Shown piece by piece: positions 1-29,101 of a DNA stretch of 29,101 nucleotides. The DNA is from Macrostomum lignano (taxonomy: Eukaryota), in NCBI GenBank assembly GCA_002269645.1, contig NIVC01001114.1:1-29101 (forward strand), in the 5' to 3' direction. The notes below the pieces were generated by a model, which saw nothing but the letters and a program-made list of their open reading frames with translations, did not search any database and was not told the origin of the DNA. A program made the position numbers and the translations under genes. Each line of letters begins with the position of its first letter. Within the stretch, counting starts at the first letter, position 1.

Positions 1-242
1 TTTTATAGTCTTGAATCTCAATCGAGAAAAGCAATCTGAATTTAATTTCACAAGATATTAATTTATTTATAATAATCTGACAAATAAAATGCGTAAATAA
101 ATAAAGGTGCTAATTAAATTAGTATCACACTAAGCAAATTATTAGCAGCAAAAATTACGCAAAAATACGAGCGTATAATCACAAAACCAAAAAGCTGAAT
201 TTTAAAAAATTAACACCCATTGTTTAGCACTCAGCAGTGCCG

Positions 243-1558
243 CTACTTATTGAATCCCGCATTCACCTGGCCGCCACTGCCGCTAGCCGTCACTGCAGCA
301 TCGTAGCTCGGAGGCGCGGCAGTGTACTGCGGGTACTGCGGGGCCTGTGGGTACTGCGGCTGCGTCGGGTACGGCTGAGACCCCGCCGGGTACTGCGGCG
401 CAGCGGGGTAGCTGTCGGCAGGCGGCGGGACCGTCACTTGACCGGCGCTGACCACGACGGAACTGGCGCCCTGGACCCGTCGGCGCGCCCGACTGCGCAT
501 GCCGGAGTAAATGCCGAACACGATGAGGCCGAACAAGAACAGGCCGACTAACGCGTAGACCCAAATGTTACTGCTGGTTGAATAGTAAGGAGTGTAGGTG
601 TTTGGCACGGTGTAAAACGTACTCGTGCCGCCAGGAGGTGCGGAGCAGGCGAATTTGTTTCGATCGCTGCAGTCATCCATAAAAATTGCGTAATACGAGC
701 TTTTGTCGTTGAAAGTCCCACAGCGTTCGTACGATAGGCAGCTGGACGAAGAGCCACCTGAGTAGCAGCTGATCTCCGACGTCCTAAAGCACGGATGGTT
801 CGGGAGTCAAAAACAAGAGAAAGAGTAGGTAAATGTTAGATAAAAGGAAAAACGGATCTAGAAATTACCAGAATTGTAGCGTTCCACTCAGCCAGTAGTG
901 GAGAATCGAGACGAGCGGTCGGTCAGTCCGATCCAGGTGTAGTAGCGCCTCAGACTGTTCGGCAGCAGTCGCATGAACGAGCCAATGTTGTTGTAGTACG
1001 CAACCGGAACATGTAGGAGATTCGAGCGCATGCTGTTGCAAGCTCGCTGAGCGTCAAGGTAGTTCTGGCTGCTTTCGATGCTGTCAGTACCGTAGCAGGT
1101 GCCGCTGATGTATGTCCAGCCGGGAATGCAGCCGTTAAAGTCCATCGCTCGAACTCGGACTGTGACGCCCTCGCTGTTCGACTGGTCTCCGGTCGCATCG
1201 AAGCGGACCTTCAGCGACTTCGACGGCGTCAAGATGTTGTGTTGGTAGTCTGGGATGCTGGAACCGCTAAACAGCACCTCATCGCCGGAGCTGATGGTGA
1301 ACACTGCCGAGCTGACCTTGAACGACTTGACTTCGACGAAGAATGCTCGTTGGGCGACTCCGCGTTGAACTCGCAGCTCAGGTCGGAGGAGTAGCCGGCT
1401 TCGTTCTGGCGTCTCGTGGTCAGGTAGAAGTCCGTCAGTGACGCGCTGACGATGGTAGGAGAGTCTGGGCTGCAGTAGAACTGCTGCTGGGCCGCGGCGG
1501 CCGCAACGAGGCAGACCATAAGGACCAGCAGTTTGTGCAAGCCGACTCTGTGTTGCAT
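243..1558 (-). CDS. Type I membrane protein: signal peptide, CUB domain, C-type lectin domain, TM helix, Pro/Tyr/Gln-rich tail with PPSY motif (about 410 aa after restoring two missing bases)
   Basis: ATG at 1558 (MQHRVGLHKLLVLMVCLVAAAAA). CUB-like sequence C..GYSSDLSCEF..AFFVEVKSF..SKSLKVRFDATGDQSNSEG. CTL motifs CIPGWTYISGTCY..NYLDAQRAC..WIGLTD..YWLSGT..W..C..ERC..DDCSDRNKFAC. A phase-2 GT-AG intron at 784-868 joins TG|G to give Trp. TM is IWVYALVGLFLFGLIVFGIY followed by RSRARRR. Stop TAG at 243-245. The frame needs +1 nt near 1346 and near 903. Confidence 0.8.
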
Positions 1559-2967
1559 GTCTCTGTTTCCTATGGGCTTGCGTTCTGCCTCACAATCGGA
1601 TTGAGTCTCATTTGCTAGCCGTTTCCACTGGCAATATATTCCTTTGCAAGACGAGTTTGCCGAGAGAGCTCTGATAAGATATGCCAAGTTATATTTAGTT
1701 TCTGGCTATGTACATCTGCGCTGACGAATGACATCGGCTGAAATTTAATGCTTGACAATTTGCTGAGCCACTTTCGATGATAATAATTATCGCACTTGAT
1801 GATAAAATCGCAGTAGATAACTCGTACAAACAAAAGCTGGACGCACTTGCAGTAAATTTTTGTTGCAGAGACCAACGTGCGTTGTCTTATCACAATCAGT
1901 TTGCGTGTATAGGTTGCTGCTTGGAAACCTGCATTGCCCAGTACCGACCTAAGCTGCATGGCCATTAGTTGAAGAAAAAGAGAAATGTCTCTGCAGGTCT
2001 TTCTCACTTTTGACTTACCGACCTACAAGTCATGCAAGTTACTTGTATGAGTAATAAACTGTGCTATTCAAGACAGTACAATTTATTTTGCACTTTCGAT
2101 GAGTCATTTTCATCACGACGAGACGTCTTCTGGTTGTACAAGATGTTTGAATTTTGACTTTGCAATTAGTTGGTGAAAGCAAGGACTATTCAGTAAGGAC
2201 GGGAAACTACGTCTGAAGGATCCTCGCTTGAGGTTGCATTTGTTGTGTGCACGAGCCTTCCGTAATTATAAACTATTGGCTTCTGATCTTGCTATTGGTA
2301 AACCAATAGTATTGGTAGACCGGTAGTCAGGTATCTACCCACGGAAAATTGTGCAAAAACTTCTATATAGTTTTGATATTTCTTTCAGGTTTCTTGGATA
2401 TTTGGTTATTTTTCGCAATTCTCCCTATCCGAAATCTTGCAAGATCTTTCCAAGATTATAAAAGATTTGAGTCTGACAAAATCGTACAAAGACTAAGACT
2501 GAATTATCTTATCACAAGTTAGACATCTATTATAAGAACACTTGTGGAAATCTTGCTTAGTCATGCTGGTGGACTGCACTTGCAAAATATCACCTAAAAT
2601 GATTCTGCAGAATGATCTACGAGCGTATAATTATTAACGTACATTTTTTCTAAGATTCTCAATAGATAGCCATTAGGGTAAAATGTAGTACTTGCACTTT
2701 GACTCTTGTCTTCTAATGCTCGAAAAGTAGGAGCCCGAGTATTTGAGATTTAGGCTTCAGTTTTAATAGCAATGTGGGCTCTCTGGGTTGGCTCGCTACT
2801 CTCTGCTTTGCACTGGAGCGTTTCGTCTATGGCTCAAAGCCAGCCAAGGTCCAGGGCTGCTGGCAATGCTGCGAACTAATCGTTTTGCTATACTTGATAA
2901 AAGACTTCGCAGCCGGTAGGTTTTCTTTTTCGCAGAAATTAACGTCAAAAAGAAACAAACATTTGCG

Positions 2968-3550
2968 ATGTGGAATACGTCACGTTTTTTGCTGTCGTCT
3001 CAAGTGCTGCTGATTTTGGCTGCCATATTCGTTGGGAACGCCAGCGCCTGCAAGAAAGTCACTAGACCAATCAAGAAATTATTTGCCAGTAAGTGATTTG
3101 GCTGATTTTATTAAAGAAAACTGGCTAAAGCTATGAATATGCAGAAATATCTCTGTGCCTCCCAGCAGAAACCTAAGTCGCTTTTCAATGTATATGGACT
3201 GGCAAGGCTGACTAATTGTGTCTAACCATTTCAAATTCACAGATCCGAAAGTCACGGAGGTCGACGGGCACACCTGCTACACTCAGGAGTCCATCAGGAT
3301 TGACGAAGGCGTCGCAGCCTTCACTAACGACAACATGGACAAAGACCTGTCCTTGGCTGAGTGCAAGAAGTTCTGCAAGGAGTCCGGCTTTGAAGGCAAA
3401 ATTGTCGGACTGACTCCGACCGAGTGCCACTGCAACAAGTACATGAAATACGACGGCAAGCGCGACAAGGAAAAATGCCCAATTAGGTGCAAAGGCAACG
3501 ACCAGGACTATTGCGGCGGCATTGGCTACATCTCGGTTTACCCCAGCTAG
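2968..3550 (+). CDS. Secreted single-WSC-domain protein A (142 aa)
   Basis: Exon 1 2968-3088 (MWNTSRFLLSSQVLLILAAIFVGNASACKK..., donor A|GTAAGT). Exon 2 3243-3550 (acceptor ttcacag). Phase-1 join is in frame, 429 nt. Eight-Cys WSC pattern TCYT..ECKKFC..ECHC..KCPIRCKG..YCGG..ISVY. AATAAA near 3743. Confidence 0.9.
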
Positions 3551-3911
3551 AGGGGGCGATGCTTCTGTGAAAGATGAACTATAGCTACTGTAAACTAAAT
3601 ATTGGTGGATTTTTGTTTAGTTATTTTAGAACCTTGCAGCACCCATCTGAGCTGAATTTCTTTTGCAGTCTGGTTTCTGTTTTCTTAACTATTCATTAGG
3701 TAAAACTGCAGTGTGCGATGAAGTATATAGGATCTACTCCTAAATAAAATGTATTTCAAAATGAAGTTATAAGACTTCAATTCAACTTTTAAGAATTTAA
3801 ACTATAGGTTGCCGGTTCTTCGTATTTAAGTTTAATGAGGTGAAAATAAATCAGTCAGTGTAATAAGCAACTTTTCTCACTAGATAACGCATTTTGTAGA
3901 GAATTGGGAGT

Positions 3912-3950
3912 GCTTTGCTTCAGTTCACCCAGCCGTAAAATGGGTGCCAG
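3912..3950 (-). mobile_element. Possible CORE-SINE (MIR-core-like) remnant
   Basis: Minus strand reads CCCATTTTACGGCTGGGTGAACTGAAGCA, which by eye resembles the MIR/CORE consensus CCCATTTTACAGATGAGGAAACTGAGGCA as I recall it (about 23/29). No clear tRNA head seen. Confidence 0.3.
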
Positions 3951-4488
3951 CATTAGCTGGGGTAATTGAGGGTGTGTGTGGCGACCCCCCCCCCCCAGTC
4001 CTTGGACTGAACAGCCGTACGCAGCCTTCAGATACGCCGCGCAATAGCTGCGGCTGAGCTGTCGGTTGTACATCTGCTCATTAGAGCAGGTGTTATCACT
4101 TATTATTATTACTATTATCATCACGATCATCAATTTCAGGAAGACTGCAGCTATCTACCACGAGCCATGCTGCATGCCCCGATACATATTACTGTAGTAT
4201 AAAAGCAAACCGTTAACAAGTTAAAGTTAAGGCGCATGCTGCATGAGATCACCGTATCAATCTGGCCCGAATCAGACACTGGGTGTACTTTTTTAAGATG
4301 TCCCACTTTGTTTAGGAATTCGAATAATTTGTCTATGGTTGAATCGGTCGGTCAGTCTGTACAGATCTTTTTCGATATTAATTTGCCTTCAACGCTTGCT
4401 TGGGCATAAAAAATTATTAAGTTGTAAATTATCAAGCCGCTGAGGCATCAACGAGTTCGTAGTACAAGGAGGCTTCACCTGCGGCGCC

Positions 4489-4978
4489 ATGTTGAATTTC
4501 CAATTCATTGCTTGCCTCGTGGTTCTTCTGACCACCGTAGCGTCAGTTCAAGCCTGCCCGAGGAGCTTTGTGGCGATCAGAAATACGTTTAGCTGTAAGT
4601 TTTGTATAGGCTCCGTCCGTTTAACCAGAGTCCGTTTAAACATGACCACACTCCCACTGTCACGCTGCTCCAGCTCGAATCAAGACGCTTAACGGACCCA
4701 GCTGCTTCACCGAGCGGTCTTTGCGCACCGCAGGCGAAACGGAGGGCACCTACGACGAACTGAAGGAGACGATGACTCCTGACGCCTGCCGCAAGCTGTG
4801 CAAGGACAAGGGCCATTCAGCTAGCAAAATCATTGCGGTGTCGCAGACGCTGTGCCACTGCGACAAGAACTTCAAAAAGGAGGGCTTATCGGACGTTGCC
4901 AAGTGCACGAACAGTTGCCCGGGCAATCTAGATGAGCGTTGCGGCGGTCCGGAGTATCTGTCTGCCTATCCAGTGTAG
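4489..4978 (+). CDS. Secreted single-WSC-domain protein B (136 aa)
   Basis: Exon 1 4489-4594 (MLNFQFIACLVVLLTTVASVQACPRSF..., donor T|GTAAGT). Exon 2 4674-4978 (acceptor gctccag). 79-nt phase-1 intron, 411 nt CDS. WSC pattern SCFT..ACRKLC..LCHC..KCTNSCPG..RCGG..LSAY. Confidence 0.9.
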
Positions 4979-5653
4979 GAGCCGCGCCTCGATAGTTTGC
5001 TCAAATATAAGTTTTAGAGCATGGATGGACACGTACCTAGCTATAGTCTGCGATACAAGTTAAGAGACAATTTTTTAGCTATCGTACTACCGAGTGAATT
5101 CTTTGTTTTAACTACCGGTAATAAATTACCACCATTCTATATCATTTTTGAAATAAACCTGCACATTTGGCGGCCATCCAGATTTTTTTTATATTTCCAA
5201 CAGGCACTACTAAACATACTGAAATATACTTCAAGTATAAGACGCTGGAGACAAATAGCATAGAGAGCTCTGCAAAGCGAGTTCACTTTTACTGCAGCTT
5301 AAGATTGCACTACTCAACTGACAAGTATGTTCTAGAAATTTCCAATCCAGAATTCAACCATTGGCCTGCGAAACAATGAGGACTGCAAGACCAAGGATCC
5401 CATACGAGAACATGGACTGTCCATGTGGGTGGGGTATAAAGTGAAGTTCACTTCCTGTTCAAGTGTAGTTCAAACTTCTATGATGCTCTCCGTAATAAAT
5501 GTGAACAGGAAATCATGGATCATAAAATTTCGAATTTTAAAAACCTTGCTGCAGAGAGGAAAAAGTATATTTACCTAGTAACTCTAAACGATCGAGACAC
5601 AATGTAAATTCTAGCAAAAGTGATCAGAGACACTGTGAAAATCAATTGGTACT

Positions 5654-5686
5654 TACGAGGCGTGTCCGGAAAGCAGTGCTAACTTT
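5654..5686 (+). mobile_element. Possible solo mariner-type terminal inverted repeat remnant
   Basis: TACGAGGCGTGTCCGGAAAGCAGTGCTAACTTT resembles the TACGAGG..GTCC..AAAGT start of mariner TIRs. No convincing partner TIR or transposase found in the window. Confidence 0.25.
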
Positions 5687-5900
5687 GACGAGGTTGCGCA
5701 AGCCTATGACCAAACTTGACGACGATGTAAATAAGCATCCGGCTTGTATAACTATCGCTAATCCTGCATGTACTTTAAGCTGGTTTGAGTTGTCTATGAC
5801 CGAGCTTTAGCCACGTGGCTTTGGCTTAAAACACGAAGAAATTATTGGGTCAAGGACAATTCATAACAGTAGAGAAAGAGAGCCATCATAAAAAATTGGC

Positions 5901-6409
5901 ATGGCGCATCGCTTAATCCTTTTAGTATTCACCTGTGGAGTCATTCTGCTTAGCAACGTTGCCGAAGTGCATGGCTTCACCCGGGCTTTTGTAGCCTTGA
6001 AAAACATGGTCTCATGTAAGCTTGTTCAGCTGTTGTCTGATTCTGTCTTGATGACGCAAATGCAAGTCCGTCTCTGTTTGAATTCCTAGCCCGGACGCAC
6101 TCCGTACTCGGTCCATCCTGCTTCACACTGAGATCCCTGAGAACTGTCGGCTCAAACGAGGGCACGTACAATAACTCCATGGTGCAGTCGTTCAAGTCCT
6201 GCCGCAACCTGTGCAAAAAGAAAGGCCACGAACAGACTGACATCATCGCGATTGAGGTCGACTTGTGCCACTGCGGCAAGGAGTTCCGCAAAAACGGCCG
6301 GGCGGACGTCAACAAGTGCTTGCACAGCTGCCCTGGCCGGATCGAGGAGCGCTGCGGAGGGCCCGGCCACATCTCCGCTTATCCATACGACATGAAAATT
6401 GACTACTAA
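5901..6409 (+). CDS. Secreted single-WSC-domain protein C (144 aa)
   Basis: Exon 1 5901-6015 (MAHRLILLVFTCGVILLSNVAEVHGFTRAF..., donor T|GTAAGC). Exon 2 6090-6409 (acceptor ttcctag). 74-nt phase-1 intron, 435 nt CDS. WSC pattern SCFT..SCRNLC..LCHC..KCLHSCPG..RCGG..ISAY. Closest to gene B (GPSCFT.RSLRT.G..EGTY). Confidence 0.9.
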
Positions 6410-6932
6410 CCAGGCAGGACTGAGTACTTTAAGTAGCTGCATCAACTAAATCGCTATATTGTCCTGGTTTAGATTTTTTGTTCTCTCATTTAAAGCACTT
6501 AGGAACGAGACGCCTTCTTTGCGTGGTACATGCGGTACCAACCAGTTTACAGATTTGTTTTGCTGTAGGCAAGCGAATTCCTCACTAAAATTAGCGCGGT
6601 AAATAAAAAAATGCTGAGTTCGATGGACAAAAGGTTACAAATAAGTTCAGCACACCTTTGACAACATGTAACGATTTACTTTAAATAACAATTGCTTCTC
6701 AAAACTTCTCTTCAAGATCTGCTATTGCCGAAGAAAGCATTTATCAGGGTATTATTTTACAACATTCTAAGATAATCTCTTAAGTGACAAAGTGAGACAG
6801 AGAGAAGGAAAGCGTCTGTTTAATGCGAATATTGGAGTCCAGCAGGAGACAGGTTCAGGAAAGTTGCAGCGGCACCGGGAAAGGGTGCCTGATGAGAAAA
6901 CTTGGTGAAAAGGTGAATCGGCTAATTCGGCA

Positions 6933-14672
<7,740 letters not shown>

Positions 14673-15288
14673 GGCTCGCATCGCTGCGATACCTTTTTTA
14701 AATCGAGTGTGACTTATTGGTGACTTGCTGCTTGAGCTCACTTCTGCAAAGGGTGCCTTTATATTTGCTCCTTTGCCTTCTTCTTTTGCATGACTTCTGC
14801 ATGCTGGACTTTGCGCCGCGGCTTATAGTTGCCGCTCTGGCCTGCATGGTACGCAGTGGTTGGCTGCAGGCTGCACCCCCCCCCTTACTGGCCAATCCTC
14901 TGAGTCCGGAAGCGTGGTCGAAGAAACCAAGCCTAGTCCTATACCGAGAACTCGGAAAGGCCGTCTCCTAATAGCGCAGCTGTATGGCTAATTCCCCTTG
15001 TACGGACGGGATCTGGCAAGCATCGATAAGATAGCACGGCTCGCCTCATGCAGTACCGTTCCCCTGAGCGGTATTCCGGTCCCTTACAGGGGCTAGCAAA
15101 ACTGTACAGCAAACTGTTTCTTAGAGACGCAAGCGTTTACCAATTGACTGCATGAAAGGTGAAGCAAAGTTCGGGTGTGCAGACAGACAGATCTAGTCAA
15201 TTGACCGTATTGACTGACTGACTCAAAGGTGGGGCGTTGGGCGGGGAAGGTGGCATTTCAAGTCAAAGTAAAGATCTTGTAGTGGCGC

Positions 15289-16278
15289 TGAGGGAATCCA
15301 AGAGGCTGAGTTAAGTACCGAGGGAATCCAAGAGGCTGAATCAAGCACTGAGGGATTCTAAGAGGCTGAGTCAAGCACTGAGGGAATCCAAGAAGCTGAG
15401 TCAAGCATTGAGGGAATCCAAGAGGTTGATAGTCAAGCACGGTGGGAATCCAAGAGGCTGATTCAAGCATTGTGGGAATATAAAAGGCTGAGTCAAGCAT
15501 TGAGGGAATCCAAGAGGCTGAGTCAAGCATTGAGGGAATCCAAGAGGTTGATAGTCAAGCACGGTGGGAATCCAAGAGGCTGATAGTCAAGCACGGTGGG
15601 AATCCAAGAGGCTGAGTCAAGCATTGAGGGAATCCAAGAGGTTGATAGTCAAGCACTTAGGGAATCCAAGAGGCTGAGTCAGACACTGAGGGAATCCAAG
15701 AGGCTGAATCAAGCACTGAGGGATTCCAAGAGGCTGAATCAAGCACTGAGGGATTCCAAGAGGCTGATAGTCAAGCACGGTGGGAATCCAAGAGGCTGAG
15801 TCAAGCATTGTGGGAATCTAAAAGGCTGAGTCAAGCATTGAGGGAATCCAAAAGGCTGAGTCAAGCACGGTCCGAATCCAAGAGGCTGAGTCAAGCATTG
15901 AGGGAATCCAAGAGGCTGAGTCAAGCATTGAGGGAATCCAAGAGGTTGATAGTCAAGCACTTAGGGAATCCAAGAGGCTGAGTCAGACACTGAGGGAATC
16001 CAAGAGGCTGAATCAAGCACTGAGGGATTCCAAGAGGCTGAATCAAGCACTGAGGGATTCCAAGAGGCTGATAGTCAAGCACGGTGGGAATCCAAGAGGC
16101 TGAGTCAAGCATTGTGGGAATCTAAAAGGCTGAGTCAAGCATTGAGGGAATCCAAAAGGCTGAGTCAAGCACGGTCCGAATCCAAGAGGCTGAGTCAAGC
16201 ATTGAGGGAATCCAAGAGGCTGAGAGTCAAGCACTGAGGGAATCCAAGAGGCTGAGTTAGACACTAAGAAAATCCAAG
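15289..16278 (+). repeat. 30/32-bp minisatellite (~32 units, GAGGGAATCCAAGAGGCTGAGTCAAGCACT) with a 304-bp higher-order duplication
   Basis: Tandem units are visible. The block near 15617-15960 recurs at offset +304 (matching ORF translations at 15617/15921 and 15739/16043). I counted 16 exact TGAGTCA. Confidence 0.95.
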
Positions 16279-16312
16279 GCTTAGTCCTTGCATTTGAACT
16301 TCCAATACTCAG

Positions 16313-16527
16313 TCTGCATTCATATTACATAAGGATGGATTAATGCGTACAAACCGCAGGTGAGTGGGTTCATCATGCCTTTGACTGGTCTCGCTTATCG
16401 CTCATTCATCAATTACACTAAAAAGAGCAGACGGGACGCAGGAGCAAGCGAGCAAAAAGTGGTGCAAACACTGGACCGATTGCTCAAAATCGAGCGAGTG
16501 CTCTTAGGCCTAGAGCATGAAGGATAG
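16313..16527 (+). CDS. Possible small spliced coding segment of unknown identity
   Basis: Candidate exons 16313-16359 (donor AG|GTGAGT) and 16431-16527, with a 71-nt intron, join in frame to SAFILHKDGLMRTNRRRDAGASEQKVVQTLDRLLKIERVLLGLEHEG*. The acceptor is purine-rich and no homology is recognised. Confidence 0.2.
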
Positions 16528-17425
16528 AATGGGTTGATGATGCCTGAGCCCATGAAGCAGCACGAAACCCCTGGACGAATTAATGTGGCCTTACGGAGTC
16601 GGGTTCAAGTCTAAAAGGAGTATTTATAAATTATAATTCGCCATATAATTTAGGCTGTCAATTTGAAAGTTCACATAGTTTTAGAGTATTTTAGCTTACT
16701 TCTAAAATAGAATGGGGAGCCGAGTGTTTCGGCAAGGCAGATGAACAGCAGAGTGGACTTGGAAAGCAGTCAAGCACTACTCATCTGAGTGGATGGCTTG
16801 CCGCAACTAACCTGAGGTGTCACTGCTAATCAGTAGCTCACTGCAGACCGACTGTGCATGGCATGGCTGCAAGTTAAAGACTGCCATAGCACTCAACTGC
16901 CGCTTGGATTTGCTGCCCTGCTCAGGCCACAGTTGCACTCTGCAGCTTGAGCCAGTAGGTCCCTATGTGCTGAAACTCTCACACAATAGAATTTTAATTG
17001 TTAGCTATACTATATCCATCAAGTCAGGCAGATTCAGTTACGTTAATAATTTACAAGTTGAAGATACTTGAGTATGACACGACTAGTCAGGTTTTTTCAG
17101 ATCTTCAAGCGGTTCAATACAACGTTTTTTCCGAAATCGAGATTAAAATAAATAAAAGAAAACACTTCTTGTTTTTAGCGTAAAAACAGATTCTGCTTTT
17201 TCACTTACAATGCGGTGCAGTAAATTCGTTTCTGAGTGCACAATTCACTTGAATAGCTACTACAAGTAAAGTTGGCAACAAAAAATAGTGTCTTACTTAG
17301 AACACCTAACTATCTACTTAAGTCTCCATTTGTATCTTACTTCCTCCCAAAAGCTTTTTTAAATTCTTATTCAAACTCTTAGTTCTTACTCGTGTGAAAT
17401 AACGACAAAAGAAAAGGTCACAAGG

Positions 17426-17902
17426 TCACAAATAGTACCCCGAGGCGAAGCCTTTTCCGCCGCACTTGAACAAATGGCTGCCGCGACAGTCCACATCGCA
17501 CTTGGACGCGTCGCGCTTGGCATGACGTCTAAACGCCTTGTTGCAATGGCAGGTTTCGTATTGCAGTATCACAAATTGATTCGAATAACCCTTTTCCGCG
17601 CAGAACTTTTGACACTTTTGAGGTTGGGCATTTTCAATATCAGCCGAGGTGCCCGAGGCCGCATCGATGAACATCCCGTCGGCGTAGTAGCATCCGGTTT
17701 CTTTGATAGTATCATCAGGATTAAATGCATTTTCTGAAAAAATTTGGTTCGTTCATACTAATTCATCACTTTAACGCCGCCAGTCTTGAAAAAAACAGAA
17801 TTGAAGCATGGAGAGGCCAAACTTACTGATAGTATTCGGGCAGGCAGCAGTAAAGCTAAGTACACAAACCAATACTGGTAGAAAAACTAGAAATTTAGCC
17901 AT
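17426..17902 (-). CDS. Secreted single-WSC-domain protein D (127 aa)
   Basis: Exon 1 17827-17902 (MAKFLVFLPVLVCVLSFTAACPNTI, donor A|GTAAGT). Exon 2 17426-17733 (acceptor ttttcag). Phase-1 intron, 384 nt CDS. WSC pattern GCYY..KCQKFC..TCHC..KCDVDCRG..KCGG..GYY. Confidence 0.9.
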
Positions 17903-18779: not shown

Positions 18780-18938
18780 TCAGCTGAGTGGACGGCTTCC
18801 CGCATCTATATAATCTGACGTGTCACTGCTAATCAGCAAGTCCCTCTCGACCCGCTGTGCATGGCGGCTCTTCGGACAGGCATTGGTAAAGCTAAGTATG
18901 CAAAGCAATACAGTTGGAAAAACTAGAATGTTCGCCAT
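18780..18938 (-). pseudogene. Internally deleted paralog of WSC gene D: signal-peptide exon without donor or WSC exon, giving a 52-aa ORF
   Basis: MANILVFPTVLLCILSFTNACPK aligns to gene D MAKFLVFLPVLVCVLSFTAACPN. The upstream flank 18941-19020 matches 17903-17975. After CPK the sequence switches to a homolog of 16780-16865. Confidence 0.6.
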
Positions 18939-25422: not shown

Positions 25423-28400
25423 TCAGGGAGGATCCCAGTCAAGTGACCCACTGATGCTGCTGTTCCAGCAGTCCTCTGGGTCCGATGGAGGGCCCCAGTC
25501 GTAGTCGGAGTCATCTGCCTCCTGGGTCGAATCCAGCCGCCGCACCTCGTAACCCCAACGTTCTGGGCGCCTCAGGGCAGCCCGAGGGCGCAACACGGGG
25601 CCCAACGGTGGCTCATCCAGCGGTTCCTCGTTGGCTTCGAGCTCTCCCGCTGCGGGGGGCGTGGGCAGTTCGGGGCTGGCGGGCCCTGCTCTACTGGTTC
25701 CTGATCGGCGGCGGGCTCTGGGACGTCAACTGGTTGGGTTGGATGGTTTGCCGGCGGCAATGCTACTTCGGCGGGAACCGTCACCGGAGGGAGCCGGTTT
25801 CGCAGAGGCCATCTGACATACATTTCCTCTTCTTCCTCCGAATCGGAGTCGGGGAACCACTGCGGTGCTTCCGGGGCTCGAGGCGCTGGGCGAACTGGTG
25901 GTCGGCCCGGTCCGGCAGGAGACTTGCGGGCAGCTGCCTGAGGCACCTCGGGCTGATATTGGGCCGGCGCGGGACGGAGCGTATCGCGATGGGTCCGGTA
26001 TACCGCGGGCCTGCCTGGCTGGGGGTGCACCGGGGCGATGTCGAACACGGCCTGGGACGGCTGGGCCACCACCTTCCAGGGGCCGGTGAACGCCTTGTGA
26101 AACTTAGGAATCTCCCATTCTTCCAGATGAGGGTTGGCCAAGAACACAATGTCACCGATGTCCAGGCTGCGGCACTTCTGCGGTCGGCGCGCTTGGTGTT
26201 GAACTCGGGTCTCGAACTTTTCCTCGATATCTGCGCGCGCCTGATCGAGATACGCCGCCAGACGGGCCGCGTAGGCAGCATGCCCGGGAGCGGCCTCAGC
26301 TGGCTCGAGAGCGACGTCCAAGGGCAGTCGAGCCTCTTGCCCGTACGTTAAGCTGAACGCGGAATACCCCGTCATGCGGTTCAGGCTGGAACGCATCGCC
26401 AGGAGGCATGCCGGCAGCTTCTCATCCCACAAGTCGTGGTCCTGTTCCAGCTGCGCCGTCAACAGGGCCCGGATCGTGCGGTGCTGGACTTCGGCCTTCC
26501 CATTGCATTGAGGATGGTATGGCGTCGTGCGGGTTTTGCGGATACCCAGAGAGTCACAAAAGCGCTGGAAGTCCCGGGACTCAAAGTGCTGTCCCTGATC
26601 CGTGTGTATCCAGTCAGGTACTCCGAACCTCGGTATGTATTCCTGCACCAGCAGACGGATGACGGTCTTCGATGTCTGGTCCCGGGTAGGGTAAGCTTCG
26701 ACCCAGCCGGTGTAGCTGTCCGTCACCGTGAGGATACTGGTGTTCCCCTTCCTTGACTTCTGGCCTCGACCCAGGGGCCCCACAAAATCCAAGTGAATGC
26801 GAGAGAACTTCTCGCTAAGTTCAAGAGATTGCGGCGAAGCTTTGGCCCGCTTGTGCGGCTTGGACCGCAAACAGCACTCGCAGGCCGCACACATCTCGGC
26901 GATCCGTCGGTGCAGGCCGGGGCGCCAGAACCGTTGGCGAAAGCGCTCGTCCACTTTCCTTCGCCCAAAGTGCCCGGCCAGAGGATCGTCGTGCAGCAAC
27001 CGGAACACCTTCTGGTCCAAGCTTTCGGGCAACACGATTTTCTTCTTGGCCGCGACCCCCTCCACATCAATCCTTAGTACGCCCTCGTCCACACTGAGCA
27101 AGCCCCAAAAAGGGGCCACCCGGCGCACCAAGGGTGGGCACAATTCCGTCCCAGCTGGCGGGGCTTTCTCTGCACCTTCTCCTAGTCGTCGCATGATCCA
27201 GGCCAAGGCAGGGTCCTTCCTTTGCGCTTCCATGAGCTCCGCCTTGCTGAGGAGGTCCCGCTGTTCCAGCAGACGCCTCTTTGTCTCCACTCGGAAAGTT
27301 CGCAAGTCCTCGTCCAGCTCCCCTGGTGGTCGGGCGTCCTCTGGCGGTCGGCAGATGGGACAGTCCCATGCTGGTGTGCAGGCCGGCGACTGAGCGCGTC
27401 GGCGTTGGTGTGTAGCCGCCCAGGGCGGTATTCCACTTCGAAATCGTACTCAGCGAGGTGAGTAAACCAGCGAGCGATCAATCCGGTCGGCTCCTTGAAA
27501 TTTCTTAGCCACGTCAGAGAGCGGTGGTCAGTGCGGACGATGAAGCGGCGACCTAGCAGGTAATACCGGAATTGTCGCGTAAAGAACACTAGGCTGAGCA
27601 TCTCCAGTTTGGTGACACAGTGGTTACGCTCACTAGACACCAGACTTCGGCTCCCGTAGGCGATGACCCGCTCACTTCCGTCCGCTTGCCTCTGGCTGAG
27701 GACTGCACCCAGGGCATTCAAGCTCGCGTCGCAGTCGAGCACGAAGATGCCCGCCTGAGGCCCGAAATCTGGGTGGTGCAGCACCGGGCGGTAACCAAGG
27801 CGCGCTTTAACTTCTCGAATGCTTGTTCCTGCTCGGGCCCCCAGCGACCCGGGATGTCCTTCGTCCCTTTCTTAGTCAGGGCGTGCAGTGGTGCGGCCAC
27901 CTCACTGTAGTCGGGAATAAACTGCCGATAATATCCGGCCTTCCCCAAGAATTGGCGGACCTCCGTGACGCTCTGGGGCCGCGGCCAGGTGTCAATGGCA
28001 CACGTCTTGTGCGGGCAGGGTGCGACGCCCTCTCTCGAGACCACATATCCTAGAAAGGTGACCTCGGATTTGGCGAAAGCACACTTGGACGGCTTCAGCC
28101 GCAGGTTTGCTGTTCTTAATTTGTTAAAGACAAGTTGCAGGTGATTCAGGTGGGTGCTAAAATCGCGAGAATGCACGATGACATCGTCAATGTAGGCCAT
28201 TGCGATTGCGGGTTGGAGCTCGGCCAACACCAGGTTCATCAGCCGAGAGAAGGTACTTGGGGCGCCCTTCAGTCCGAACGGCATTACGTTCCATTCAAAC
28301 AGCCCCATATTGGGCACAGCGAATGCAGTGTAGGGGCGGCATTCCGGCTGGATGGGCACTTGGTGGTAACCGCTCCGCAGATCGAGGGACGTGAAGTACG

Positions 28401-29101
28401 CCGACCCGCCCAGCGAAGCCAGCAGCTCATCGATTCGAGGCAGAGGGGTTACCTCGGCCACGCTGCGCTCGTTGACCTCCCGGAAATCGATGCACACTCG
28501 TAACGATCCATCGCTTTTGGGGACCAAGACCAACGCGGAGGAGTAAGGACTCTTGGAGACCTTTACCTTGCCGGTCTCCAGCCAGCCCTGCACCTGGTGC
28601 CGCACTTCTTCCTGGTAGGCCTGAGGGAGGCGTCTTGGATGCATCTTGACGGGCTCGAGTCCGTCAACTTGATTTCGTGTGTGACGACGTCGGTGACCCG
28701 CAGGTCGTTCTCCTCCTCGCGAAGACATCGGTGTTGTCGTTGAGTAGGCGTAATAGCCGTTGCCGCTCCTGGGAGAGAGTTGACTGCCCATCTCCAGGTC
28801 TTTCATCCAGTCCGGCGGCTTCCTGGCAGCTGTTGAATCCTTTGGAGTGGCTGTGGGGCCGGGCCCGGTGTTGCCCATTGGCGTAATCCGGTTGACCAGG
28901 GCCACTTCCTTTAAGGCGCTCGCCTGCGCTACTACCGTGCCAGCGGGCAGCTGTACGGTTCTTCGGACCAGTTGATGAGGCGAACTCGGACCCACCCGTC
29001 TACGGCTTGGTCCAACGAGCGACTGACCGCGATCTCCGGGAAGGCTTCCATGTCGACTCCCTCCACCAGACAGTCGCCTTCCCAAGGTCGCCTCGCACTC
29101 T
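25423..29101 (-). CDS. pol: Gypsy pol polyprotein (post-protease linker, RT, RNase H, integrase), 5'-truncated by the window, 7 single-base frameshifts
   Basis: RT: LRVCIDFR, LDLRSGYHQV, MPFGLKGAP, YIDD, FLGY. RNase H: CDAS, LEML, VRTDHRSL, ADALSR. Integrase: HHCC zinc finger, LDFVGP..TDQG..NGKAE (DDE), GPW motif. C-terminus RPRAALRRPERWGY..DPP* ends at 25423. The frame is restored by +1 nt near 28960, 28771, 28714, 28660, 27787, 27382 and 25685. Confidence 0.93.

Follow-up and report, generated by a model that had tools for sequence, protein, structure and literature searches.

A Macrostomum-specific subfamily of predicted secreted single-WSC proteins in Macrostomum lignano, with the prostate as candidate source

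Introduction

Small secreted proteins carrying a WSC domain are an established class of prostate and seminal-fluid candidates in Macrostomum lignano. The prostate-linked transcript RNA815_80.4 encodes two WSC domains (Arbore et al. 2015, PMC4490696), and in situ hybridisation of 150 tail-enriched, socially plastic transcripts yielded 98 that are prostate-specific, 76 of which are prostate-limited, most of the prostate-limited candidates being predicted secretory proteins (Weber et al. 2018, PMC5977470). Table S1 of that study contains at least ten RNA815 loci with WSC best hits (15018, 15432, 16008, 17071, 18589, 20163, 29683, 38600, 39357 and 7102), and includes short WSC transcripts of 486-522 nt, the size expected of a single-WSC protein (RNA815_38600.1, 522 nt; RNA815_38600.2, 486 nt; RNA815_39357, 513 nt; PMC5977470). 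Knock-down of Mlig-pro63 (RNA815_39357, ‘WSC domain-containing 2’) lowers the suck propensity of the mating partner, and knock-down of a second WSC seminal-fluid candidate lowers offensive sperm competitive ability, P2 (PMC6953679; bioRxiv 10.1101/734301). Here we describe four genes, A to D, each encoding one WSC domain behind a predicted signal peptide, in a 29,101-bp stretch of M. lignano DNA that constitutes the complete contig NIVC01001114.1 of assembly GCA_002269645.1 (Mlig_3_7) and is referred to below as the window.

The prostate candidates with WSC domains (Mlig-pro4, -5, -11, -38, -46, -49 and -63; PMC5977470; PMC6953679; bioRxiv 10.1101/734301) come from the same species as A-D, several have similarly short transcripts, and they occur, as these genes do, in multiple genomic copies. 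They differ from A-D in their Mlig_3_7 identifiers (Mlig021499, Mlig025972, Mlig001287, Mlig027242 and others). The likeness between the two sets is one of description, and the prostate expression and the phenotypes obtained by RNA interference (RNAi) belong to the Mlig-pro candidates.

Outside M. lignano, the Pfam family PF01822, the cysteine-rich domain (CRD) of yeast Wsc1 (7pz2) and the WSC domain of human KREMEN1 (5fws, 5fww) have in common with A-D the eight-cysteine pattern, a length of about 80 residues and a C-terminal CGG...Y. In contrast to Wsc1 and KREMEN1, A-D are stand-alone single domains without a transmembrane segment, kringle or CUB domain, and where the usual WSC motif reads C-x-C-G they have C-H-C without exception, with N, D or G next. 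Secreted proteins made only or mainly of WSC domains occur among fungal lectins (Serendipita indica WSC3) and in bivalves (the Crassostrea ‘putative fungistatic metabolite’, Mytilus LOC143076337), and these give the best per-domain matches outside the family; however, they string 3-23 WSC domains along one polypeptide, compared with one in A-D. Glucan binding is known for fungal WSC proteins. WSCD1 and WSCD2, for their part, are membrane proteins that combine a sulfotransferase domain with two WSC domains. That architecture is absent from A-D; human WSCD2 is named as a ‘significant’ homologue in the M. lignano seminal-fluid papers, and the part in common is the WSC domain.

We propose that A-D are members of a subfamily of small secreted WSC proteins, specific to Macrostomum, which would act as extracellular glycan-binding modules and whose likeliest source is prostate secretion, and we assign this reading a probability of about 0.6. 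Below we provide the gene models, delimit the subfamily, examine the selection acting on it and weigh the proposed function against its alternatives.

Four two-exon genes

The listing of open reading frames (ORFs) for the window contains four domain-encoding ORFs and four short leader ORFs. For each gene every GT/AG pair that keeps an open frame was enumerated from this listing and by direct reading of the DNA, and one pair per gene combines a consensus donor with a polypyrimidine-AG acceptor in phase 1 (Table 1). The many other in-frame GT/AG models of each gene were discarded because only the phase-1 GTAAG models match the intron positions of the paralogues and the annotated proteins. An earlier sequence-only reading of this DNA had proposed four genes of 127-144 amino acids (aa) in a tandem family with a two-exon design and a phase-1 intron; the genes lie at the coordinates it gave, the length range is exact, and the splice models bear out the design. 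Its description of B and C as close relatives and of A and D as strongly diverged likewise agrees with local alignments, in which B and C are 53.5% identical and all other pairs among the four 30-35%. A canonical AATAAA follows the stop codon by 142-193 nt in A, B and C; in D only the variant AATAAG is found, 55 nt past the stop. A comparison of 400 bp upstream of each of A, B, C, D and the further paralogue A' (see below) gave no promoter motif of 7-9 nt common to at least four of the five.

Table 1. Coordinates of the WSC genes and of other features in the window (slashes mark exon-intron boundaries)
Feature	Part	Positions	Strand	Intron	Product	Content
Gene A (Mlig020127)	exon 1	2968-3088	+	154 nt	142 aa	Predicted signal peptide MWNTSRFLLSSQVLLILAAIFVGNASA, then mature N-terminal Cys and basic linker CKKVTRPIKKLFA; donor CCA/GTAAGT, phase 1
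Gene A	exon 2	3243-3550	+			One WSC domain (residues 51-133) and stop; AATAAA 193 nt downstream of stop
Gene B (Mlig002939)	exon 1	4489-4594	+	79 nt	136 aa	Predicted signal peptide and linker; donor GCT/GTAAGT, phase 1
Gene B	exon 2	4674-4978	+			WSC domain (residues 46-127) and stop
Gene C (Mlig022985)	exon 1	5901-6015	+	74 nt	144 aa	Predicted signal peptide and linker; donor CAT/GTAAGC, phase 1
Gene C	exon 2	6090-6409	+			WSC domain (residues 49-129), 7-residue C-terminal extension, stop
Gene D	exon 1	17902-17827	-	93 nt	127 aa	Predicted signal peptide MAKFLVFLPVLVCVLSFTAA, then CPNTI; donor TCA/GTAAGT, phase 1
Gene D	exon 2	17733-17426	-			WSC domain (residues 39-118) and stop
Orphan D-like leader	ORF	18780-18938	-		52 aa	MANILVFPTVLLCILSFTNACPKSRHAQ..., signal-peptide-like start intact
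Orphan D-like leader	copied segment	18871-18956				86 bp, 80% identical to the start of D exon 1 and adjoining 5' flank
G-protein alpha-subunit gene	gene	6933 to beyond 13550	-		614 aa (annotated)	Pfam G-alpha in two ORFs
G-protein alpha-subunit gene	ORF	8923-9822				Pfam G-alpha
G-protein alpha-subunit gene	ORF	10309-10548				Pfam G-alpha
Repeat-bearing region	region	7576-8469	+			Between G-alpha ORFs; not called as a gene
Repeat-bearing region	array	7892-8398	+			21-bp minisatellite, 24 copies, 93% matches; reads (SGQQPSQ)n
Simple repeat	array	13039-13449				(AGAC) x 103
Simple repeat	array	14063-14534				(ATAG) x 118
30-bp repeat	array	15288-16278				32 units; higher-order periods of 122 and 152 bp
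Retrotransposon pol region	region	25572-29085	-			Reverse transcriptase, RNase H, integrase zinc-binding domain, integrase core

The spliced models were compared with public protein records by exact look-up. A is identical to PAA72073/PAA72086 (Mlig020127), B to PAA72072/PAA72087 (Mlig002939) and C to PAA72071/PAA72088 (Mlig022985), all of which UniProt names ‘WSC domain-containing protein’, and the GenBank gene calls on the contig (2968-3550, 4489-4978 and 5901-6409) agree with our models. The Mlig_3_7 gene set was derived from RNA sequencing (RNA-seq) with StringTie, TACO and TBONE, its gene boundaries being placed by trans-splicing and poly(A) evidence (PMC5730564). Since the models of A, B and C match RNA-seq-derived proteins residue for residue, their two-exon messenger RNAs are observed transcripts: the three are transcribed as independent two-exon messages. 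The exact D protein has no record in the GenBank and UniProt look-up; its homeolog Mlig014715g1, on contig NIVC01000092.1, is annotated, 97% identical with four substitutions, and occupies an equal gene length of 477 bp.

The same observations address the possibility that these are exons of larger multidomain genes. The agreement of A, B and C with RNA-seq-based models, together with the stop codon in the domain exon, shows that they are not, and the attempt to refute their stand-alone nature failed. The expectation that annotation would miss the signal peptides did not survive, as GenBank and UniProt carry A, B and C with these segments included. The genes are thus already in public annotation, and the gain lies in interpretation and not in discovery; what is new here is the delimitation of a Macrostomum-specific single-WSC subfamily of seven or more paralogue types, the gene architecture conserved in it, its extra N-terminal cysteine, and the finding that it is under purifying and not diversifying selection.

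One WSC domain per protein

All four proteins match Pfam PF01822 above its gathering score of 27.8, A, B, C and D reaching 39.7, 41.6, 33.7 and 43.5 bits (E-values 5.7e-10, 1.5e-10, 4.2e-08 and 3.8e-11), and each contains a single WSC stretch that covers the profile from position 3 or 4 to position 82 of 82. Eight cysteines (C52, C81, C85, C102, C104, C119, C123 and C131 in the numbering of A) recur without exception in the eight family members that were aligned. The assignment of one eight-cysteine WSC domain to each protein therefore holds, and with it membership of A-D in the WSC family is secure at the level of sequence.

Searches against known structures point in the same direction. A profile built from five family members matched the yeast Wsc1 CRD (7pz2) with an E-value of 5.3e-4, chain 9n3u with 7.2e-4 and the KREMEN1 WSC domain with 1.4-1.8e-3; these matches, though weak, fall specifically on the WSC region. 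A PDB sequence search with A alone returned nothing meaningful. An AlphaFold2 model computed from only five aligned sequences reached a mean predicted local distance difference test (pLDDT) of 43.9 and a predicted template modelling score (pTM) of 0.31, and is too poor for a fold search.

Predicted leaders and mature proteins

In A-D the mean Kyte-Doolittle hydropathy over 12 residues is 2.6-3.2 in the leaders and does not exceed 1.5 elsewhere. Positions -3 and -1 hold small or uncharged residues (A/A, V/A, V/G and T/A), which fits cleavage by signal peptidase. The hydropathy scan found no second hydrophobic segment in any of the four, and the reading frame ends directly past the domain. On these heuristic grounds (hydrophobic core, -3/-1 site and lack of a second hydrophobic segment) A-D are predicted to be secreted, and the claim of a stand-alone signal peptide followed by a single WSC domain and, directly thereafter, the stop is borne out. 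If cleaved as predicted, the mature proteins comprise 107-119 residues with an isoelectric point of 8.1-9.1 and 8 or 9 cysteines; only C carries an N-glycosylation sequon in its mature part. The linker between leader and domain, previously described as short and basic throughout, is so in A, B and C, but that of D is roughly neutral.

A Macrostomum-specific subfamily

The sequence-only reading counted four genes. Four is correct for the window but not for the species, as the paralogue types of M. lignano number at least seven: A', A, B, C, D, D2 and D3. A' (Mlig027865, 139 aa) is 74% identical to A and lies about 5 kb upstream of it, between a PID/SH2 gene and A; it is present in NIVC01001115.1 and NIVC01002740.1 (retrieved stretches L001 4819-5329 and L004 4844-5354) and falls about 1.7 kb past the left end of the window, which starts too late to include it. 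D2 (Mlig004834, 127 aa) is D-like and sits at an unrelated locus. D3, an intact D-type paralogue with leader, phase-1 intron and WSC exon (L005 5151-5226 and 5327-5637; also at about L006 2628-3111), is found 4.8-7.3 kb upstream of D2, where the gene calls of those loci omit it. A further A-like gene was recovered from a 938-bp genomic contig of Logan run SRR31628403 (exons 106-238 and 376-683). Its leader end reads A/CPKK...ILK, with ILK at the exon end; then come an intron of phase 1, matching in position, and a WSC exon.

An alignment of eight members contains 16 invariant columns, which include the eight cysteines, the C-H-C motif and CGG...Y. In seven of the eight a ninth cysteine stands directly after the predicted cleavage site, beside a conserved linker motif; C alone is without it.

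How far the subfamily is set apart became clear from a profile search of 1.84 billion representative proteins, which returned 1,925 matches. Nearly all of the best 150 of these, which were inspected, are multi-WSC proteins. When the retrieved sequences were re-scored domain by domain, family members reached at least 92 bits and every other retrieved protein at most 49 bits, the lower group including a Mytilus protein with five WSC domains, the two-WSC M. lignano protein Mlig015747 and fungal proteins. Judged by these scores, A-D and their relatives form a distinct Macrostomum-specific clade. Word-indexed homologue searches with 4- and 11-sequence profiles returned only 5-6 clusters and did not recover the prostate WSC genes.

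The phase-1 intron separates leader and domain in all members examined, which shows that the two-exon unit was duplicated as a whole when the family expanded. Tandem duplication of this unit, which is old, gave rise to A', A, B and C, and dispersed duplication to D, D2 and D3.

Besides the intact genes, the window contains an orphan D-like leader (Table 1). It has lost the splice donor, no WSC exon follows it, and it has no counterpart at the matching position on NIVC01000092.1; it is clearly a dead fragment.

Copy number in this assembly calls for caution. Positions 1-13577 of the window are 99.6% identical to a part of the 499-kb contig NIVC01001115.1 (L001 7032-20583), an overlap that represents either assembly redundancy or a recent homeolog and is consistent with the description of Mlig_3_7 as a redundant assembly of a hidden polyploid (PMC5730564). 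Owing to such redundant copies, the counts of g1, g2 and g3 gene copies in Mlig_3_7 exceed the number of distinct genes.

Purifying selection on old duplicates

The ratio of nonsynonymous to synonymous substitution rates (dN/dS) was estimated pairwise from codon alignments by the Nei-Gojobori method. Between homeologs it is 0.11 for B, 0.15 for C, 0.08 for A' and 0.34 for D; the A homeologs give 1.3, a value that is based on only six changes and is uninformative. Between paralogues, A and A' give 0.24 at a dS of 0.70, and B and C 0.21 at a dS of about 2.2, which is saturated. None of the homeologous copies examined has a broken reading frame. Low dN/dS combined with dS from 0.7 to more than 2 identifies these genes as old duplicates, each maintained by purifying selection. 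The sequence-only reading had called the family diversifying; with dN/dS of 0.08-0.34 in every informative pair, diversifying selection is rejected at the whole-gene level.

Proposed function and its alternatives

Each of these genes would encode a cleavable signal peptide, a short conserved linker and then one disulfide-knotted WSC module, and the mature product would be a basic protein of about 12-13 kDa. We envisage that it is exported co-translationally from gland cells and cleaved after the A or G at position -1, that the WSC module folds with four disulfides, and that it then binds an extracellular glycan ligand in a lectin-like manner. The most specific candidate source is the prostate, given that the species has at least ten prostate-specific WSC loci, several of them similarly small. 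That A-D themselves are prostate products, transferred as seminal fluid at mating, has by this analogy a chance of roughly one in three. The prostate and seminal-fluid idea is more specific than that of a generic mucus lectin or antimicrobial effector. It also qualifies the view of A-D as an uncharacterised system: no published function was found for these particular genes, but the protein class is documented and some of its members have RNAi phenotypes.

The ninth cysteine allows a more elaborate and clearly more speculative version of the proposal. It might join two molecules into disulfide-linked dimers and thereby make binding bivalent. A-D would then be bivalent minimal lectins of the ejaculate, linked through their N-terminal cysteines and binding glycans of the partner's female tract or of sperm, with effects on sperm storage or post-mating behaviour, and the seven or more paralogue types would reflect specialisation for different ligands. 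We regard this version as improbable.

Several observations weigh against assigning A-D to prostate secretion or to glycan binding. The 18 RNAi-tested transcripts have Mlig_3_7 identifiers that exclude Mlig020127, Mlig002939, Mlig022985, Mlig014715, Mlig027865 and Mlig004834; the 36 RNAi primers, searched with as many as three mismatches allowed, have no match in the window or at related loci; and the identifiers of the subfamily are absent from the full texts and supplements that were searched (including PMC7336406, PMC5730564 and PMC12896417). The subfamily is, moreover, clearly apart in sequence from the other M. lignano WSC proteins retrieved, so that a tissue assignment made at the level of the family may not transfer to it. 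Purifying selection differs from the pattern commonly emphasised for seminal-fluid proteins, and the quality of the AlphaFold2 model is too low to assess carbohydrate-binding residues.

The alternative that survives best, possible although on balance unlikely, is that A-D are digestive, epidermal or immune lectins, secreted by the gut or epidermal glands, which bind beta-glucans or other glycans from microbes or from the diatoms that serve as food, and have no part in reproduction. The diatoms fed to M. lignano store a beta-1,3/1,6-glucan, a type of polymer to which certain fungal WSC lectins bind. Outside the family, the closest relatives are multi-WSC proteins of bivalves, from Mytilus and in the form of the Crassostrea ‘putative fungistatic metabolite’, and fungal WSC proteins, among them those of Serendipita indica. 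Purifying selection and old duplications would suit conserved ligands, and the lack of any link by identifier or primer to the tested seminal-fluid transcripts fits as well. Yet the similarity to fungal WSC domains is low, at 49 bits or less per domain, and the only tissue documented for M. lignano WSC proteins in the papers examined is the prostate.

A second alternative dispenses with glycans altogether, the WSC domain serving as a protein-binding ligand or a structural part, be it as a cofactor in signalling or adhesion or as a component of eggshell, cement-gland or adhesive secretions that is cross-linked through the unpaired N-terminal cysteine. The odd ninth cysteine at the mature N-terminus of seven of the eight aligned members, beside the conserved linker motif, is what such a role might look like. 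The WSC domain of KREMEN1, one of the structural matches of the family profile, takes part in protein-protein contacts, and the tail of M. lignano has several gland types besides the prostate. However, paralogue C does without the extra cysteine, the repeats and low-complexity stretches that mark structural or adhesive secretions are missing from these proteins, and there is no known partner; we consider this explanation improbable. That the genes are artefacts of annotation, whether pieces of a larger multidomain gene or pseudogenes in decay within a redundant assembly, is largely refuted and very unlikely. In its favour, the window is in part a 99.6%-identical redundant copy of a section of a larger contig, one D-like leader is dead and the D copy of the window has no exact-sequence protein record. 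Against it, all four genes begin with an ATG and a signal peptide of their own and stop directly after the domain (with AATAAA downstream in A, B and C), the RNA-seq-derived proteins agree exactly with A, B and C, and the homeologous copies examined have intact frames with dN/dS well below 1.

Other features of the window

The A-B-C cluster is separated from D by a gene for a G-protein alpha subunit, which converges on the 3' end of C (Table 1). The region with the 21-bp minisatellite, which probably sits in an intron of the G-alpha gene, can be read on the plus strand as a heptapeptide repeat that follows a signal-peptide-like segment; the region may represent a nested gene for a secreted repeat protein or just a minisatellite. 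Three repeat arrays lie between the G-alpha gene and D, and the 30-bp array has a longer version on the homeologous contig. The far end of the window is taken up by a retrotransposon pol region, probably from a long terminal repeat (LTR) element, which ends within 16 bp of the contig end. Its domains are spread over three overlapping ORFs, a pattern that implies frameshifts, and its G+C content is about 60%, compared with about 45-50% in most of the remaining window.

Implications

If A-D are expressed outside the prostate, they would amount to one more lineage-specific expansion of lectins. Wherever they are expressed, the conserved two-exon unit and its N-terminal cysteine illustrate how an animal can use a lectin module as a secreted protein in its own right. 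Should they be prostate products, they would provide a compact and tractable set of candidate seminal-fluid lectins, single domains of about 115 residues, in a species for which RNAi, transgenesis and behavioural assays are available and in which proteins of the WSC class already affect sperm competition and partner behaviour. And if the ejaculate-lectin version of the proposal were true, the cross-linking of glycans would offer a molecular mechanism for the effects of seminal fluid in a hermaphrodite.

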